A stretch of 64,000 nucleotides of DNA from Octopus sinensis (taxonomy: Eukaryota), in assembly GCF_006345805.1 (NCBI RefSeq), contig NC_043011.1, forward strand, positions 26,734,464 to 26,798,463, read 5' to 3'. The notes beneath the pieces are model-generated. The model ran no database searches. It was not told the DNA's origin and saw only the letters and a program-made list of their open reading frames with translations. Within the stretch, counting starts at the first letter, position 1, and every line of letters starts with the position of its first letter. Below, one piece after another: positions 55,201 through 61,200 of this stretch. Both the position numbers and the translations under genes were made by a program.

Positions 55201-58200
55201 AGACACCACTTTCTGTCCTTTTGGGATACTTTCACCTCCTTCAATACTATACCCCATTAAGTTGAGGAGTCTTGTCTTGCAAGTACTTGGTGACCTCACC
55301 AGTGCTGATGCCATGAAAATAGCACTCCAATATACTCTGTAAAGTGATTGGTGTTAGGGAAGACATCCAAAGCAGATGTAGGAGTTTACTGCAGCTCACT
55401 GCCTTGTTGATTCCTGTTGAACCCATTCAACCCATGCCAGTATGGGAAAAGGGGCGTTAAATGATGATGACAATGACAACAACGACAACAACAACAACAA
55501 CTTCAAGAGATCTTGAGCACTATGGAAACCTTTAGGAATTCAATTTCTCATATCATTATCACTTGGCAACAGTGGGATGTGTGTGTATGTGTGTATGTAT
55601 GTATGTATGTATGTATGTATGTATGTATGTATGTATGCATGTATGGATGGATGGATCGATGGATGGATTCCTGTATGCACTGATAGAAATAGATAAAGCA
55701 TGAGTATAATAATGATTTCTTCTCTTGGCATGAAGCTGCTCTAAAAAGATGAAATTAAGTATCTGGAGTTTCTCCAGCATATGGCTGGTTCCTTCCTCAG
55801 ACACTTAACTCCATCAGCTTAAATCAGCTTCATGTCATTATTATAACCTTGCATTATCTATTTTCTCATTCTCTTGTTGTCTCAGGGAGTCAATTTTAAA
55901 GTCAAAGAGAAACAGTTTTGTGTAACATTCAATCTTTTCTCAATTGTATAATATTAAAATTTTGTATAAATAAATAAATGCGCCCTTTTATAGCCTAGCC
56001 AGGCTCATGGGCCTGGTTTCCCGGTTTCTATGGCATATGTGTTCCCCAACTCGACGGGACGCCAGTCCATTGCAGCGTTACTCATTTATGCCAGCTGAGT
56101 GGACTGGAGCAACGAGAAATGAAGTGTTTTGCTCAAGAACACCACGCATCGCCCAGTCCAGGAATCGAAACAACAATCTTATGATCATGAGTCCAACACC
56201 CTAACCACTAAGCCACGTGCCTCCACTTATAATATTGTATAGCATTATAAAATCAAAAAAGGCAATGAAATACTTTATAGAAAATCAAAAAAAAGTATAC
56301 ACCTCAAGTTTTTCACCATGTTCCTTTTTCAGTTGCTCCTCTTGCTCACGATGTTCTTTCATCAAATTATCGATTTCTGACTCCTTCTCATTTTCAAGGC
56401 GTTCTCCTAAAAATTTGAAGAAAACAATGATGTTATGAGGAAAGAACAAATTTTTCTAACTTTTCCTCTCTTTAGAATTGGACACTACAAGCATAAATTT
56501 GAGACGGAAAAGAGCAACTGCTCTAATCATCTCACTGTCATCATTGCATGTTGCTGTTTTCCATTTCAAATTGGTACTTATAATATCTAATATAATTTTA
56601 CAGTGAAAATATCAACAGTTAATAGGTGCAGGAGTGGCTGTGTAATAACAGTGTTACGCAAAACGGCAGTGCATCAGCATGGCCACAGCCCTGTGCTGAA
56701 ACTTAAGAAAAAATAAAAAGGTTTTTTGAAAGTTTTCATCAAAATTTTCTGAAAAGCTTTTTGTGAAATTTTCATAAAAACTTTCTGAAAAGATTTTTGA
56801 AAATTTTAATCAAAATTTTCTGAAAAGTTTTTTGAAAATTTTCATCAAAATTTTCTGAAAAGTTTTTTGAAAATTTTCATCAAAATTTTCTGAAAAGTTT
56901 TTTGAAAATTTTCATCAATTTTTTCTGATCAAACTCCATTCTTCATCAAGTGCCACATATTAGATGAGGCTCCGAGTAATAAGTGTCGCACAAAATGGCG
57001 GTGCATCAAAATTTTTTGAAAGTTTTCATCAAAATTTTCTGAAAAGCTTTTTGTGAAATTTTCATAAAAACTTTCTGAAAAGATTTTTGAAAATTTTCAT
57101 CAAAATTTTCTGAAATTTTTTTTGAAAAGTTTCATTAAAATTTTCTGAAAAGTTTTTTGAAAATTTTCATCAACATTTTCTGAAAAGTTTTTTGAAAATT
57201 TTCTGAAAATTTTAATGACACATTTCAAAAAAAATTTCAGAAAATTTTGATGAAAATTTTCAAAAAAATTTTTTGTTTTGTTACGTTTCAGCTCGGAGCT
57301 GCGACCATGCTGATGCACCGCCATTTTGTGCGACACTTATTACTAGGAGCCTCATCTAATATGTGGCACTTGATGAAGAATGGAGTTTGATCAGAAAATT
57401 TTAATGAAAATTTTCCAAAAATTTTAAAGAAAATTTTGCTGAAAATTTTCAAAGAAGTGTTGAGAAAATTTTAATGAAAATTATCCAAAAACTTTTCAGA
57501 AAATTTTGATGAAAATTTTCAAAAAACTTTTCAGAAAATTTTGATGAAAATTTTCAAAAAACTTTTCAGAAAATGTTGATGAAAATTTTCAAAAAATTTT
57601 TTATAAAATTTCGATGAAAATTTTCAAAAACCTTTTCAGAAAATGTTAATGAAACTTTTCAAAAAAAATTTCAGAAAATTTTGATGAAAATTTTCAAAAA
57701 ATTTTCGAAAAAATTTTTTTTTTTGTTAAGTTTCAGCTCGGAGCTGCGGCCATGCTGATGCACCGCCATTTTGTGCGACACTTATTACTAGGAGCCTCAT
57801 CTAATATGTGGCACTTGATCAGAAAGATTTAATGAAAATTTTCAAAACGCCCTTGAGAAAATTTTGATGAATATTTTCAAAAAACTTTTCAGAAAATTTT
57901 GATGAAAATTTTCCAAAACTTTTAAAGAAAATTTTGCTGAAAATTTTCAAAAAACGTTTCCGAAAATTTTGATGAAAATTTTCAAAAAACTTTTCAGAAA
58001 ATTTTGATGAAGATTTTCAAAAAACTTTTCAGAAAATTTGGATGAAAATTTTCAAAAAAATATTTTGTTTTGTCTTAACTTTCATCTCAGAGCTGCGGCC
58101 ATGCTGATGCACTGCCGTTTTGCTCTATACTTATTACTAGGAGCCTCCTCTAATATGTGGCACTTGATGAAGAATGGAGTTTGATCAGAAAGATTTAATG

Positions 58201-61200
58201 AAAATTTTCAAAAAACTTCTCAGAAAATTTTGAAATTTTCAGCAAAATTTTCTTTAAAATTTTTGGAAAATTTTCATTAAAATTTTCTGATCAAACTCCA
58301 TTTGCCACATATTAGATGAGGCTCCTAGTAATAAGTGTCGCACAAAATGGCGGTGCATCAGCATGGCCGCAGCTCTGAGATGAAAGTTAAGACAAAACAA
58401 AAAAGTTTTTTGAAAAATTTTCATTAAAATTTTCTGAAAAGTTTTTTTGAAAATATTCATCAAAATTTTCAAAAAAGTTTTTTGAAATTTTTATCAAAAT
58501 TTTCAGAAAGTTTTTTTGAAAATTTTCATTAAAATTTTCTGAAAAGTTTTTTGAAAATTTTCATTAAAATTTTCTGAAAAGTTTTTTGAAAATTTTCATT
58601 AAAATTTTATAAAAAATTTTTTGAAAATTTTCATCAACATTTTCTGAAAAGTTTTTTGAAAATTTTCATCAAAATTTTCTGAAAAGTTTTTTGAAAATTT
58701 TCATCAAAATTTTCTGAGAAGTTTTTTTGAAAATATTCATCAAAATTTTCTCTAGAGTTTTTTGAAAATTTTCATTAAATCTTTCTGATCAAATTCCATT
58801 CTTCATCAAGTGCCACATATTAGAGGAGGCTCCTAGTAATAAGTGTAGAGCAAAACGGCTGTGCATCAGCATGGCCGCAGCTCTGAGATGAAAGTTAAGA
58901 CAAAACAAAAAAGTTTTTTGAAAATTTTCATCCAAATTTTCTGAAAAGTTTTTTGAAATTTTTATCAAAATTTCTGAAAAGTTTTTTGAAAATTTTCATC
59001 AAAATTTTCTGAAATGTTTTTTGAAAAATTTCATTAAAATTTTCTGAAAATTTTTTTAAAATTTTAATCAAAATTTTCAGAAAGTTTTTTTGAAAATTTT
59101 CACCAAAATTTTCTGAAATGTTTTTTGAAAATTTTCATCAAAATTTTCTGAAAAGTTTTTGGATAATTTTTATCAAAATTTTCAGAAAAGTTTTTTGAAA
59201 ATTTTCTGTGAAGATTTTTGAAAAGTTTTCTGTAAAGTTTTTTGAAAATTTTCATCAAAATTTTCAAAAAAGTTTTTTGAAAATTTTCATCAAAATTTTC
59301 TGAAAAGTTTTTTGAAAATTTTCAAACATGCACAGACCCACACACAGACAAAGGTGCACGTATACACACATGTTTGTACATGTATATATATGTGTGTCTT
59401 CACACATAATGTTAAGTTAATGCTAAATATGTCAAAGTACTTTGTACACACTGATGATTTTTCTACATTGGCAAACATGTTTGTCATTGTCGATGTCACC
59501 ACTGCCACCATGACAACGACAATGACCACAACAACCATGACCATCATCATCATTTTAATAACCACTTTTCCATGCATTAATTGAACTTGTGTTGCCAATC
59601 CTTACCTGTCATAAGTAATATTTCCCCTAATGCCAACACTTACCTGTCAGGTAATATTTCCCCAAGGAAGGTATATTTTTATAGAAATCCTGAAATTGAA
59701 GGCACACACACTCATGCGTGCATGCACATGCACACACACACACAACTTCTTTTACTTTCTGGCTATCACAACATTTTGACTACACACACACGGGTGCATG
59801 TGGGAGGTGTGGAACAGGTGATGATTGGTGACTGGAAAGGTATCTAGCCATCGAAAAATCTGCTTCAATGTATTCTGTCCGCCCCACGCAAGGTATGGAA
59901 AAGTGGATGTTATATATATAAATACTGAATACAACTAAACAAAAATATTCTTACACAAAATTTTTACTAACACAGATTTAATTAAATATAAACACTAAAA
60001 TGGTTATAGGAATTGTGGAGATTGCATATGGGTTGATGCAAAAAGGTTAAATGATACAACAGACAATCCTTTTGATTAAAAGCCTTGTGCATTAATGGTC
60101 ACACTGATTGCAATTATGTTAGTAGCATTCACTGGTAAAGCCTTGTATCATAACAGCTATACCAATGGTAATTATTTTGGTATTAATTGATAAAGCATGT
60201 TTGTTACCAAAATGTATTTCTGATTCCGAGTTTATAACACCAATCTCTCTCTCTCTCTCTTTCTCACACACACACACACACACATGCACATACAGTAATA
60301 TTGGCTTCAAATTTTGGCACAAGGCCGGCAAGTTTGGTGTGGAATGGGGAAGTCAATTACATCAACCCCGGTGCTTGACTGGTACTTATTTTATCAACCC
60401 CGAAAGGATGAAAGGCAAAGTCAACCTTAGCAGAATTTGAACTCAGGGTATAAAGATGAACCAAAGGCCACTAAGCATTTCGCCCAGCATCCTAACGATT
60501 CAGCGAGCTCACTGCCTTACCATTCACACAATAATATTATTCATCAACATAATTATTTTTATTAGTAAATGTTAATCCATGTTAGTAATCTAGAGCAGTG
60601 GTTCTCAATCAAACAAATAACAGCCTCTCACAAAAATAAAAAGGAAATTTTTATCCATTTTATTTATAAGGAGACATAATAGAATTTCCATCCATATAAT
60701 TCTTTGCAATATAAACTTGGCAATAAGTCCACTCCTTTTTCAATCCAATCCCCAGATGCCCACCCATGGAGGGGGATACCATCTCCTTTCATGAGAAACA
60801 CTGATCTAGAGGACAAAATACATCATTAAAGTGTTAGTGGATATTATTAGATGTAGGTAACAAAACATCACATCAGGTTGTTAGTATTTTATACTAACGC
60901 AAAGCATTGATTTGCTCTTGATATTCTGCCTCTAACTTCTTATAGAGCTCTTGCTGCTTATAAGACCATTCCTTTTCCATTTCTTCTAGAAGAGTAGCTT
61001 GGTATGAATTGAAAGCACTCTGGAGAGAGGAATTACGTTCTTTCAAGCTTTCTGCATTTTTAACAGGATACCAAATATACAAAGACATGGAAATAAAAAA
61101 AAATATCTCATACAAATGTTTCAAATGTGGGGACATACATAAATGAATTGAAGATAAATACTATATAAGCCATGTTCCACTAACTACTGACACCCAACCT

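Follow-up and report, generated by a model that had tools for sequence, protein, structure and literature searches.

A composite array of retroposon-tail cassettes and a quasi-palindromic 35-bp monomer with two orientation flips in an octopus intron

In Octopus sinensis, a 2.7-kb tandem array that reverses its direction twice raises the question of whether such a structure is a mobile element with fold-back arms or a repeat that was built up in place. The initial annotation, made on the 64-kb stretch of DNA analysed here (hereinafter referred to as the window), had left the choice between a foldback-type element and a SINE-tail satellite.

Layout and orientation of the array

The composite array occupied positions 56626-59325 of the window and was composed of an AT-rich 35-bp monomer, present in ~55 copies, and of seven GC-richer cassettes (83-127 bp). 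The monomer, AAAAGTTTTTTGAAAATTTTCATCAAAATTTTCTG, was recovered by TRF as a 35-mer in three runs, 56717-57213, 57391-58059 (as the reverse complement), and 58401-59323, in which monomers stood head to tail at a period of 35 and a higher-order unit recurred. The GC content was 43% in the cassettes vs 17% in the monomer runs, and each cassette was spaced from the next by 301-498 bp in a fixed phase. All 51 matches to a 24-nt monomer core (up to three mismatches) were located within the array, against a chance expectation of 0. The modular higher-order array of 35-mers and cassettes that had been described was thus confirmed by the TRF runs and the seven cassettes. The longest open reading frame within the array (78 aa) was repeat sequence, and no coding capacity was found.

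The 35-mer was quasi-palindromic, with 28 of its 35 positions matching its own rotated reverse complement. TRF detected sub-periods of 12 and 23 within it, and the monomer could be described as three units of ~12 bp each, for which the perfect palindromes AAAATTTT, GAAAATTTTC, and TGAAAATTTTCA form the basis. The core TGAAAATTTTCA occurred 31 times and GAAAATTTTC 36 times, none of them outside the array. Because the monomer is built on palindromes, 8-12 bp of identical sequence are available in inverted alignment at every monomer. For the same reason, orientation was called from about seven informative positions per monomer and from the cassettes, whose direction was unambiguous.

The array ran in the + direction until junction J1 (57198-57204), in the - direction until junction J2 (58232/58233), and in the + direction thereafter, and the coordinates previously given for the two flips agreed with these within ~20 bp. 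The first + block contained cassette C1 (56626-56719), run A1 (56720-56926; ~6 monomers), C2 (56927-57009), and A2 (57010-57203; 5.5 monomers). A1 was 96.9% identical to A2 across 192 bp, and this homology stopped exactly at J1. Block 2 (57204-58232, -) comprised A3 (2 monomers), C3 (57271-57396), A4 (9 monomers), C4 (57714-57822), A5 (7 monomers), C5 (58064-58190), and A6 (1.5 monomers), all read on the minus strand. Block 3 (58233-59325, +) comprised A7 (2 monomers), C6 (58287-58403), A8 (11 monomers), C7 (58785-58911), and A9 (12 monomers). J1 was a tail-to-tail switch with a 6-nt ambiguous zone, and J2 was a head-to-head switch that coincided exactly with the left border of a 143-bp island conserved in Octopus vulgaris. 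Both junctions were situated between A4T4 cores, with a microhomology of TTTTCT at J1 and 1 nt at J2. A + - + order in which both junctions lie in cis and coincide with short inverted repeats or microhomology is the layout expected of template switching, and the array showed it.

Inverted copies and the orthologous locus of Octopus vulgaris

Both diagnostic variants reported in mirror image were found: v1 at 57413-57450 (+) and inverted at 58231-58268, with an extra direct copy at 57911-57948 (+), and v2 at 57575-57612 (+) and inverted at 58601-58638. An imperfect palindrome was located at 57858-58608, with its centre near 58233 and arms of ~375 bp at 86.6% identity. The other longest inverted alignments (672 bp at 84.7%, 475 bp at 89.1%, and 399 bp at 91.7%) occupied different diagonals. 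The proposal that block 3 is an inverted block 2, forming a palindrome whose arms reach ~1 kb, was not supported, since the arms were 85-92% identical and the alignments were not colinear in the window. Inverted copies shared 85-93% identity vs 85-97% for direct pairs, and were not the more similar class. Along its whole length, block 2 could be aligned with blocks 1 and 3 taken together (90.4% over 978 columns). Unlike this colinear alignment, the best cassette pairs followed a mirror pattern: C2 (+) and its inverted partner C3 (-), which straddle J1, were 97.6% identical, as were C5 (-) and its inverted partner C7 (+), and these closest pairs were of opposite orientation. No single event, whether one inversion, one inverted triplication, or one palindrome, reproduced the present order.

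The orthologous site of O. vulgaris, taken from an independent assembly (L001), was occupied by an array with the same outer boundaries and the same + - + layout, and the 40-mer at J1 was identical. From C1 through the head of C4 (~1.2 kb around J1), the identity between the window and L001 was 99.33%, and that of the array flanks was 99.7-100%. Next to these near-identical flanks the array itself varied structurally: it measured 2.70 kb with seven cassettes in the window vs 1.85 kb with five cassettes in L001, and the difference of ~850 bp lay on the J2 side. The J2 junction sequence of the window was missing from L001, in which the - to + flip was found at another place, and the replaced J2-side stretches were only 90-93% identical between the assemblies. 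Further, cassettes of the type referred to below as beta were not present in L001. L001 was nearer to the palindrome picture, with arms of ~530 bp at 87.8% identity and a short centre.

Assemblers are known to struggle with inverted tandem repeats, and the strong difference on the J2 side despite near-identical flanks might suggest that assembly errors account for the flips or for what distinguishes the two assemblies. However, J1 and the surrounding 1.2 kb were 99.3% identical in the independent assembly, and a - to + switch followed further on in both. Moreover, the inverted copies were 8-15% diverged and carried private indels in C4, C6, and C2, whereas a chimeric foldback read would produce near-identical arms. 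Because J1 and the + - + layout recur in the O. vulgaris assembly, the flips did not arise from misassembly or from foldback reads, which is settled for J1; assembly error is thus a very unlikely explanation.

As judged from these identities, J1 predates the split of the two octopus lineages compared, and the J2 side appears to have been rearranged again after the split in at least one lineage. The beta units cannot have diverged in place since the split, because the flanks differ by <1%. Their presence in one array and absence from the other may reflect either loss in O. vulgaris, an old polymorphism, or import from another locus.

Cassettes and their relationship to mobile elements

Three old cassette lineages were present in the one array. 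C1 was an outlier (~30% diverged, with ~70% identity to the other cassettes), and the remaining cassettes were of two types, alpha and beta, which were ~12% apart. C2 was of the alpha type and 3'-truncated (last ~42 nt missing), and C7 was of the beta type. C6 was a mosaic, or alpha/beta recombinant, with an alpha core, a beta tail, and a private 10-bp deletion, and C4 carried a private 17-bp deletion. The alpha and beta cassettes had a common start phase, at the boundary between TTTTCTGA and TCAAAC, and a common end phase, at the boundary between AAAAAAG and TTTTTTGAAAA. The monomer preceding a cassette carried the linked variant CATTAAA, and additionally ATCTTT before C4, C5, and C7, while the variant CATCCAAA was common to the monomers following C5 and C7. 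Since alpha and beta share junction phases and linked variants in the flanking monomers, the cassettes were copied as blocks of DNA; because monomers on either side carry linked variants, the duplicated unit was larger than the cassette and had variable ends. The 35-mer was also in identical phase after all three lineages, which could equally be subfamilies of a dispersed element with a native 35-mer tail.

Positions 65-123 of the cassette matched the tail of a dispersed, otherwise unrelated repeat at 52157-52217 (minus strand) with 81-88% identity (E down to ~1e-15), and a weaker match was found to the tail of the common SINE (27 nt, 88.9%). The cassette 3' half is therefore a retroposon (SINE/LINE) tail, as the dispersed repeat shares the module; like a SINE, the cassette has a 3' tail in common with other retroposons and an A-rich terminus. 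C1 started with the 16 nt that open the common octopus SINE head (GCAGGAGTGGCTGTGT), joined to a retroposon 3' tail with an A-rich terminus. The term SINE-tail satellite was thus a fair description, in that the cassette was derived from a retroposon tail. A pol III head (A and B boxes) was absent from the alpha and beta cassettes, and C1 held 16 nt of it only, with no B box. ARAGORN found nothing, and all matches to Rfam were far below the gathering thresholds. Variable 5' truncation, TSDs of their own, and dispersed copies, the marks of retroposon insertion, were not found for the cassettes within the window and L001, and the cassette 5' ends were identical.

A retroposon tail joined to a minisatellite in constant phase could also be the signature of a dispersed non-autonomous mobile family, in which case the locus would consist of nested or adjacent insertions in either orientation, possibly self-targeted. 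Candidates include a retroposon with a minisatellite tail, a tandem-repeat MITE, and a Helentron-like element as in bivalves. The junction phase shared by C1, alpha, and beta and the bona fide retroposon tail module are in accordance with such a family, and import from elsewhere would explain why beta units occur in the window only while the flanks are <1% different. About 900 unclassified SINE families have been reported in O. vulgaris (PMC13282606), and mobile elements carrying tandem repeats do exist in molluscs (PMC3879986). Against this, no further copy of the 35-mer or of an alpha or beta cassette was detected across the 64-kb window and the extra ~23 kb of L001 (~87 kb in total), vs ~20 copies of the common SINE. 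The lack of a full pol III head, of TSDs, and of variable 5' truncation and the linked monomer variants flanking the cassettes also argue against it, and we regard a dispersed family as possible but rather unlikely.

No word of >=8 nt common to the two ends was found at 56626/59325, and the sole shared 7-mer (AGGTGCA, 27 nt past the right end) was at chance level for a TSD. A search for terminal modules of the TR-MITE type (DTC84-like) gave no matching pair, the left end being C1 and the right end bare 35-mers. DTC84, a MITE from the clam Donax trunculus (PMC3879986), and similar bivalve elements are likewise molluscan composites, in which non-repetitive modules accompany short tandem arrays inside the element. 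However, they have fixed left and right modules and are high-copy and dispersed, whereas the octopus array showed neither terminal modules nor TIRs, and no additional copies were seen in the ~87 kb.

The remaining mobile candidate was a true foldback transposon with blocks 2 and 3 as its arms. The array does share with Drosophila FB, Tetris (PMC4079207), Galileo (PMC3573991), and sea-urchin TU inverted arms of tandem subrepeats able to fold back, with 35-mer runs and cassettes in both orientations, and L001 with its ~530-bp arms (87.8% identity) and short centre comes closer to this form. Satellites can also be seeded by foldback elements (PMC4079207). Inverted termini of the FB type were rejected, because the array begins with C1 (+) and ends with a 35-mer run (+), and no clean terminus bounds block 2 on its outer side, since block 1 adjoins it there with the mirrored cassettes C2/C3. 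Membership among foldback elements, as initially proposed, therefore fails: the outer ends are co-oriented, no TSD, coding capacity or coding partner was found, no second copy occurs in the ~87 kb, and the identity of inverted copies lies within the range of direct ones. A foldback transposon is hardly credible here.

Proposed origin of the array and its place in the host transcript

The best explanation, which we hold with moderate confidence, is a locus-specific composite tandem array of a retroposon fragment and a quasi-palindromic minisatellite that was amplified in place and repeatedly strand-switched. In a possible order of events, a ~125-bp retroposon fragment, the 3' half of which is a SINE/LINE-type tail bearing a stem-loop and an A-rich terminus, would have joined a 35-bp AT-rich minisatellite. 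Unequal exchange between monomers would then have amplified the cassette together with flanking monomers into a variable higher-order repeat of ~300-500 bp. Judging from junction anatomy, segments may have been inverted more than once at the A4T4 palindromic cores, either by fold-back priming or by template switching during replication, in events of the ODIRA, DUP-TRP/INV-DUP, or fold-back-inversion types.

The PcH-Sat of the limpet Patella derives from the Nin-SINE (PMC11121367), and conversion of transposable elements to tandem repeats is known generally (PMC6947457, PMC5932611). As in such TE-derived mollusc satellites, a retroposon fragment serves as a building block amplified at the DNA level; unlike them, the octopus array is very small (2.7 kb), is known from one locus, and has inverted blocks, and the retroposon-derived cassette travels in it as a passenger between runs of a separate 35-bp monomer. 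ODIRA (PMC10766183) and DUP-TRP/INV-DUP (PMC11293582, PMC4352052) likewise yield + - + orders with tail-to-tail and head-to-head junctions in cis, placed at short palindromes or microhomology, and a middle block homologous to both flanks. Those events are recent, span kilobases to megabases, and leave near-identical copies, whereas in the octopus array a divergence of 8-15% separates the copies, the three blocks have lost their colinearity, and rearrangement has apparently gone through several rounds or at least two. The array also resembles hypervariable minisatellites with polar variability and inversion-bearing higher-order satellites, in which unequal exchange and conversion reshuffle variant monomers, as one of its ends is stable (99.3% between assemblies) and the other highly variable. 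For a classical minisatellite, the interspersed retroposon cassettes and strand flips are unusual.

The array was contained in an intron (56407-60898) of a host coiled-coil gene on the minus strand, between exon A (60899-61051) and exon B (56303-56406), whose acceptor lies ~220 nt from the array. The two exons joined in frame, and the joined peptide was 100% identical to an O. vulgaris protein over 85 aa, which bore out the intronic position. Exon A, of 153 nt, is frame-preserving, and isoform X2 of O. sinensis skips it. The gene had been called FLACC1-like, but neither that name nor a Pfam family was found for the product and its homologues, which were named "hypothetical", "uncharacterized", or "reticulocyte-binding protein 2 homolog a-like".

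As RNA, the segment 57858-58608 was predicted to form one hairpin of ~370 bp on either strand. The sense strand of the window gave a fold energy of -411 kcal/mol (z -48.7), and L001 one of -566 kcal/mol. The kilobase-scale hairpin RNA previously suggested is supported as a thermodynamic prediction, with a single hairpin of ~370 bp. The inverted layout could have been kept for function, with a long intronic dsRNA hairpin that would serve as a substrate for ADAR or for small RNAs, or would modulate exon A skipping. RNA editing is extensive in octopuses, the predicted hairpin potential exists in both species although the J2 sequences differ, and the exon skipped in an annotated isoform lies directly upstream of the array intron. 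However, an all-direct control stretch of the array also folded well (z -14.8), no Rfam match approached its gathering threshold, and the paired sequence on the J2 side was not conserved between the assemblies, which fits neutral turnover. A functional role of this kind would therefore seem doubtful. The host pre-mRNA is predicted to hold a long imperfect hairpin.

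Structure and orientation of the composite array

A composite repeat with two components was delimited at 56626 to 59325 of the window. TRF detected three runs of a 35-bp monomer (AAAAGTTTTTTGAAAATTTTCATCAAAATTTTCTG), the second of which was the reverse complement, and also reported sub-periods of 12 and 23. All 51 matches to the 24-nt monomer core (≤3 mismatches) were located inside the array, the chance expectation being 0. The monomer runs amounted to 1917 bp (approximately 55 units, 17% GC) and the seven cassettes, each up to 127 bp, to 783 bp (43% GC), in a window of 35% GC. 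The cassettes were C1 (56626-56719, +; an outlier with a SINE head), C2 (56927-57009, +; 3'-truncated), C3 (57271-57396, -), C4 (57714-57822, -), C5 (58064-58190, -), C6 (58287-58403, +), and C7 (58785-58911, +).

Scoring of both unit orientations, together with the cassette strand, assigned the array to the + strand until ~57200, the - strand until ~58230, and the + strand thereafter. A two-state alignment placed the first switch (J1) at 57198-57204, ambiguous across TTTTCT, and the second (J2) at 58232/58233. The two orientation flips proposed in the initial annotation were thus borne out, and both of the mirror-image variants that it had described were present at their positions. The monomer itself was nearly palindromic, with 28 of 35 positions matching its own rotated reverse complement, and comprised three subunits of ~12 bp around AAAATTTT. 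Two perfect palindromes, GAAAATTTTC with 36 copies and TGAAAATTTTCA with 31, were confined to the array.

A single palindrome with 1-kb arms, as initially suggested, was not recovered by self-BLAST. The best inverted alignment was that of 57858-58608 with itself (arms of ~375 bp, 86.6% identity), and further inverted alignments (672 bp, 84.7%; 475 bp, 89.1%; 399 bp, 91.7%) lay on different diagonals. Direct pairs had the same identity range as inverted pairs, and the best pair overall was direct (monomer runs A1 and A2, 96.9% over 192 bp). Resolved to single monomers, block 2 (J1 to J2) and block 3 (right of J2) had several ordered variant runs in common, among them the "tataaaa"-C22-perfect run, the monomer pairs that precede C3 and C6, and the CATCCAAA monomer following C5 and C7. 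The shared runs nevertheless make up a mosaic, and the proposal that block 3 is largely an inverted copy of block 2 was not supported as a single colinear copy. The two closest cassette pairs, C2/C3 and C5/C7 (97.6% each), were each opposite in orientation, while C6 was a mosaic and C1 an outlier with ~70% identity. Compared by eye with the 5' halves of the remaining cassettes, the upstream flank of C1 showed ~44% identity and was taken as non-homologous.

Although the array resembles a foldback structure at both the DNA and RNA level, the tests that define foldback transposons spoke against the foldback element first envisaged: the outer ends were not inverted, no target site duplication above chance was detected at the array ends, and arm identity was not raised. 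No coding capacity was found in the array, nor was a second array copy found in ~87 kb of octopus DNA (the window and further sequence of the Octopus vulgaris locus).

Comparison with the Octopus vulgaris locus

The orthologous Octopus vulgaris locus (L001; GCA_951406725.2, OX597831.1:51291561-51331624) contained the host gene with its introns. Its overall identity to the window was ~97% (megablast), and the two sequences were distinct; an Octopus sinensis protein fitted one window exon better than it fitted L001. The orthologous array (L001 27674-29519) also showed the + - + layout, with left and right boundaries exactly as in the window and an identical J1 sequence. In the stretch running from C1 up to the C4 head, the arrays had 8 mismatches over 1195 columns (99.33% identity), and the array flanks were 99.7% and 100% identical. 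The identical J1, boundaries, and layout in an independent assembly rule out an assembly or chimeric-read artefact at J1 and show that the flipped arrangement already existed before the two lineages separated.

The L001 array was smaller, with five cassettes in 1.85 kb versus seven in 2.70 kb in the window. Cassettes of the beta type were missing from L001, leaving C5 and C7 without a counterpart. A 143-bp island (window 58233-58375) was conserved with one mismatch, and the window J2 coincided exactly with its left edge. The J2 sequence of the window was missing from L001, in which the strand changed ~75-140 bp further left (L001 coordinates). Differing material was present on both sides of the island, namely 57823-58232 (410 bp) in the window versus 28152-28323 (172 bp) in L001 on one side, and 58376-59225 (~850 bp) versus ~27773-28008 (236 bp) on the other; the best cross-matches of these replaced stretches reached only 90-93%.

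C6 of L001 was purely of the alpha type, differing from C3 at 3 of 114 columns, whereas C6 of the window combined an alpha core with a beta tail, a composition that marks it as a recombinant or conversion product. Beta and alpha cassettes diverged by ~12%, and the C5 unit differed from the C7 unit by ~8% over 399 bp, versus only 0.7% in the orthologous part of the array; the beta units therefore long predate the separation of the two assemblies. Their presence in one assembly and absence from the other may reflect loss in Octopus vulgaris, an old structural polymorphism, import from elsewhere, or an assembly error.

Cassette origin and rearrangement of the array

Over its final ~60 nt, the cassette read GGCGGTGCATCAGCATGGCCGCAGCTCYGAGMTGAAA... 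and then became A-rich. This segment was shared, at 81-88% identity (E down to 1e-15), with the 3' end (52157-52217) of an unrelated dispersed repeat, and it also had a weaker match to the abundant octopus SINE, in the tail of the latter. C1 started with the exact first 16 nt of the head of this SINE, the rest of the head, including the B box, being missing. ARAGORN found no tRNA-like head, and Rfam returned only AT-rich hairpin "miRNA" matches (16-32 bits versus gathering scores of 44-180), which were taken as chance. Because of these tail matches, the short C1 head without a B box, and the lack of meaningful ARAGORN or Rfam matches, we regard the cassette as a retroposon fragment and not as a working SINE. 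All copies of the alpha and beta cassettes started and ended in a uniform 35-mer phase, and the adjoining monomers carried linked variants. Both features indicate that the cassettes multiplied as passengers of DNA-level duplications with breakpoints in the monomer runs and not through independent insertion.

The abundant octopus SINE was present in ~20 copies in the window, or about one per 3 kb (e.g., 43050-43410, 19197-19566, 21731-22104, and 53446-53793). Its head reads GCAGGAGTGGCTGTGTGGTAAG and its tail GGCGGTGCTCCAGCATGGCCGCAGTC, with a TA/TG microsatellite in the interior. The above-mentioned dispersed repeat with the cassette-type tail module at its 3' end, of no assigned class, lay at 52150-52700 on the - strand, with further copies at 49806-50159 and 39738-39932; it may have the same LINE partner as the fragment from which the array was seeded. 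The window also contained a long (AGC)n microsatellite at 12951-13156 (~66 triplets, with 24-bp and 48-bp higher-order periodicity) and, at 1951-2292 (-), a 113-aa ORF with weak matches to the helix-turn-helix families HTH_32, HTH_28, and HTH_7 (E 0.02-0.06), which looks like an N-terminal remnant of a Tc1/mariner-type transposase.

The + - + topology gives a tail-to-tail junction at J1 and a head-to-head junction at J2. Both junctions lay between A4T4 palindromic cores with a short shared sequence at each, near-identical cassettes were mirrored across them, and block 2 was 90.4% identical to the joined blocks 1 and 3 over 978 columns. Such features are consistent with a higher-order tandem repeat, formed in situ, that underwent more than one strand-switch event. 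The switches would have arisen by template switching at short inverted repeats, one of which is supplied by every monomer. Template switching of this kind leaves comparable signatures in ODIRA (PMC10766183) and in DUP-TRP/INV-DUP events (PMC11293582, PMC4352052).

Three one-step models were considered. A single simple inversion of 57204-58232 was rejected, as re-inverting this segment lowered the mean identity of neighbouring cassettes from 93.5% to 91.7% and paired the 97%-identical A1 and A2 runs with cassettes only 89% alike. The model of one recent fold-back palindrome agreed neither with the sequences beside J2, which differ in junction type, nor with arms only 86.6% identical. A clean inverted triplication giving three copies was at odds with C1 and C7, which mismatched their expected partners. 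Since no one-step model gives the present order, we infer from the sequence that several rounds of rearrangement, together with unequal exchange and conversion, would have been involved.

The array is not a SINE, as it lacks a promoter head and its cassettes were copied at the DNA level. The closest known kind is the transposable element-derived tandem repeats of molluscs (PMC11121367, PMC3879986, PMC6947457), to which the array adds palindromic monomers and inverted blocks. No description of the 35-mer or the cassette was found in the literature searched, and exact-pattern scans for both gave no match in metagenome, prokaryote-genome, and viral contig collections, which hold no cephalopod DNA. 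Nothing found indicated a new element class or a demonstrated function.

Host intron and predicted hairpin RNA

Exons at 60899-61051 (exon A) and 56303-56406 (exon B) on the - strand had good splice sites and joined in frame, and the joined 85-aa peptide matched a 314-aa Octopus vulgaris "hypothetical predicted protein" (CAI9736123.1) at 100%. These results confirmed that the array is intronic, within a 4.49-kb intron (56407-60898), with its left end ~220 nt from the exon B acceptor. The gene was initially labelled FLACC1-like, but none of the host-protein homologues found bore a FLACC1 name; the Octopus sinensis homologue was named "reticulocyte-binding protein 2 homolog a-like," and those of cuttlefish and Lottia were unnamed. 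Neither the exons nor the complete host protein were assigned to a Pfam family, the exon B peptide alone had no match in a word-indexed protein search, and ten window ORFs were absent from the protein collection. Exon A (153 nt, frame-preserving) is included in the Octopus vulgaris model CAI9736123.1 and skipped in "isoform X2" of the Octopus sinensis homologue (P0013, in which ...QEMESQI is followed by GERLENEK...); the array-bearing intron is the one immediately downstream of exon A.

A second, distinct tRNA-like SINE family (gtggaggcacgtggcttagtggttagggtg...) was located just past exon B (56100-56230, -) and recurred at least three times elsewhere in the window (61301-61427, 46525-46651, and 63370-63477). 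Elsewhere in the window, a 182-aa ORF with a coiled-coil-like C-terminus was identified at 8955-9503 (+), and a frameshifted stretch at 23790-23945 was possibly related to it. This ORF had no homologue in a search of 5.8 billion proteins and no Pfam family; it may be an exon, a pseudogene, or a chance ORF. The neighbouring gene in Octopus vulgaris (L001 39294-40064, -, locus coordinates) encoded a USP8-like ubiquitin hydrolase with USP8_dimer and UCH domains, a gene that can usefully anchor synteny when this locus is sought across the cephalopods.

The 751 nt around J2 (57858-58608) were predicted to fold into one nearly continuous hairpin of ~370 bp, with -425 kcal/mol (z -33.7) on the + strand and -411 kcal/mol (z -48.7) on the gene-sense strand, versus -224 kcal/mol (z -14.8) for an all-direct control stretch of the same length. 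The Octopus vulgaris palindrome (1068 nt, gene-sense strand) reached -566 kcal/mol. These predictions make long dsRNA from the intron plausible for either taxon. Because the paired sequences on the J2 side were not conserved between the window and L001, neutral turnover would fit the hairpin region better than selection. We consider it improbable that the cassette and 35-mer represent an undescribed cephalopod repeat family, foldback-like or minisatellite-tailed, whose palindromic monomers repeatedly build new inverted arrangements and which supplies a ~370-500 bp intronic dsRNA hairpin beside the skipped exon as an ADAR or small-RNA substrate or a splicing modulator.

The array is thus a genuine composite repeat, derived from a retroposon and located in an intron, whose presence an independent assembly confirmed and whose structure is unstable. 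It provides a worked example of self-destabilising repeats, in which a retroposon fragment and a palindromic minisatellite form a higher-order array that repeatedly flips strand; one junction is fixed between two octopus lineages, and the other side has been remodelled by ~850 bp despite flanks that are 99.7-100% identical. Such loci are test cases for assembly quality and structural variant calling in repeat-rich cephalopod genomes. Octopus is known for massive RNA editing, and loci of this kind are also candidate sources of long intronic dsRNA in animals whose ADAR editing is very active.
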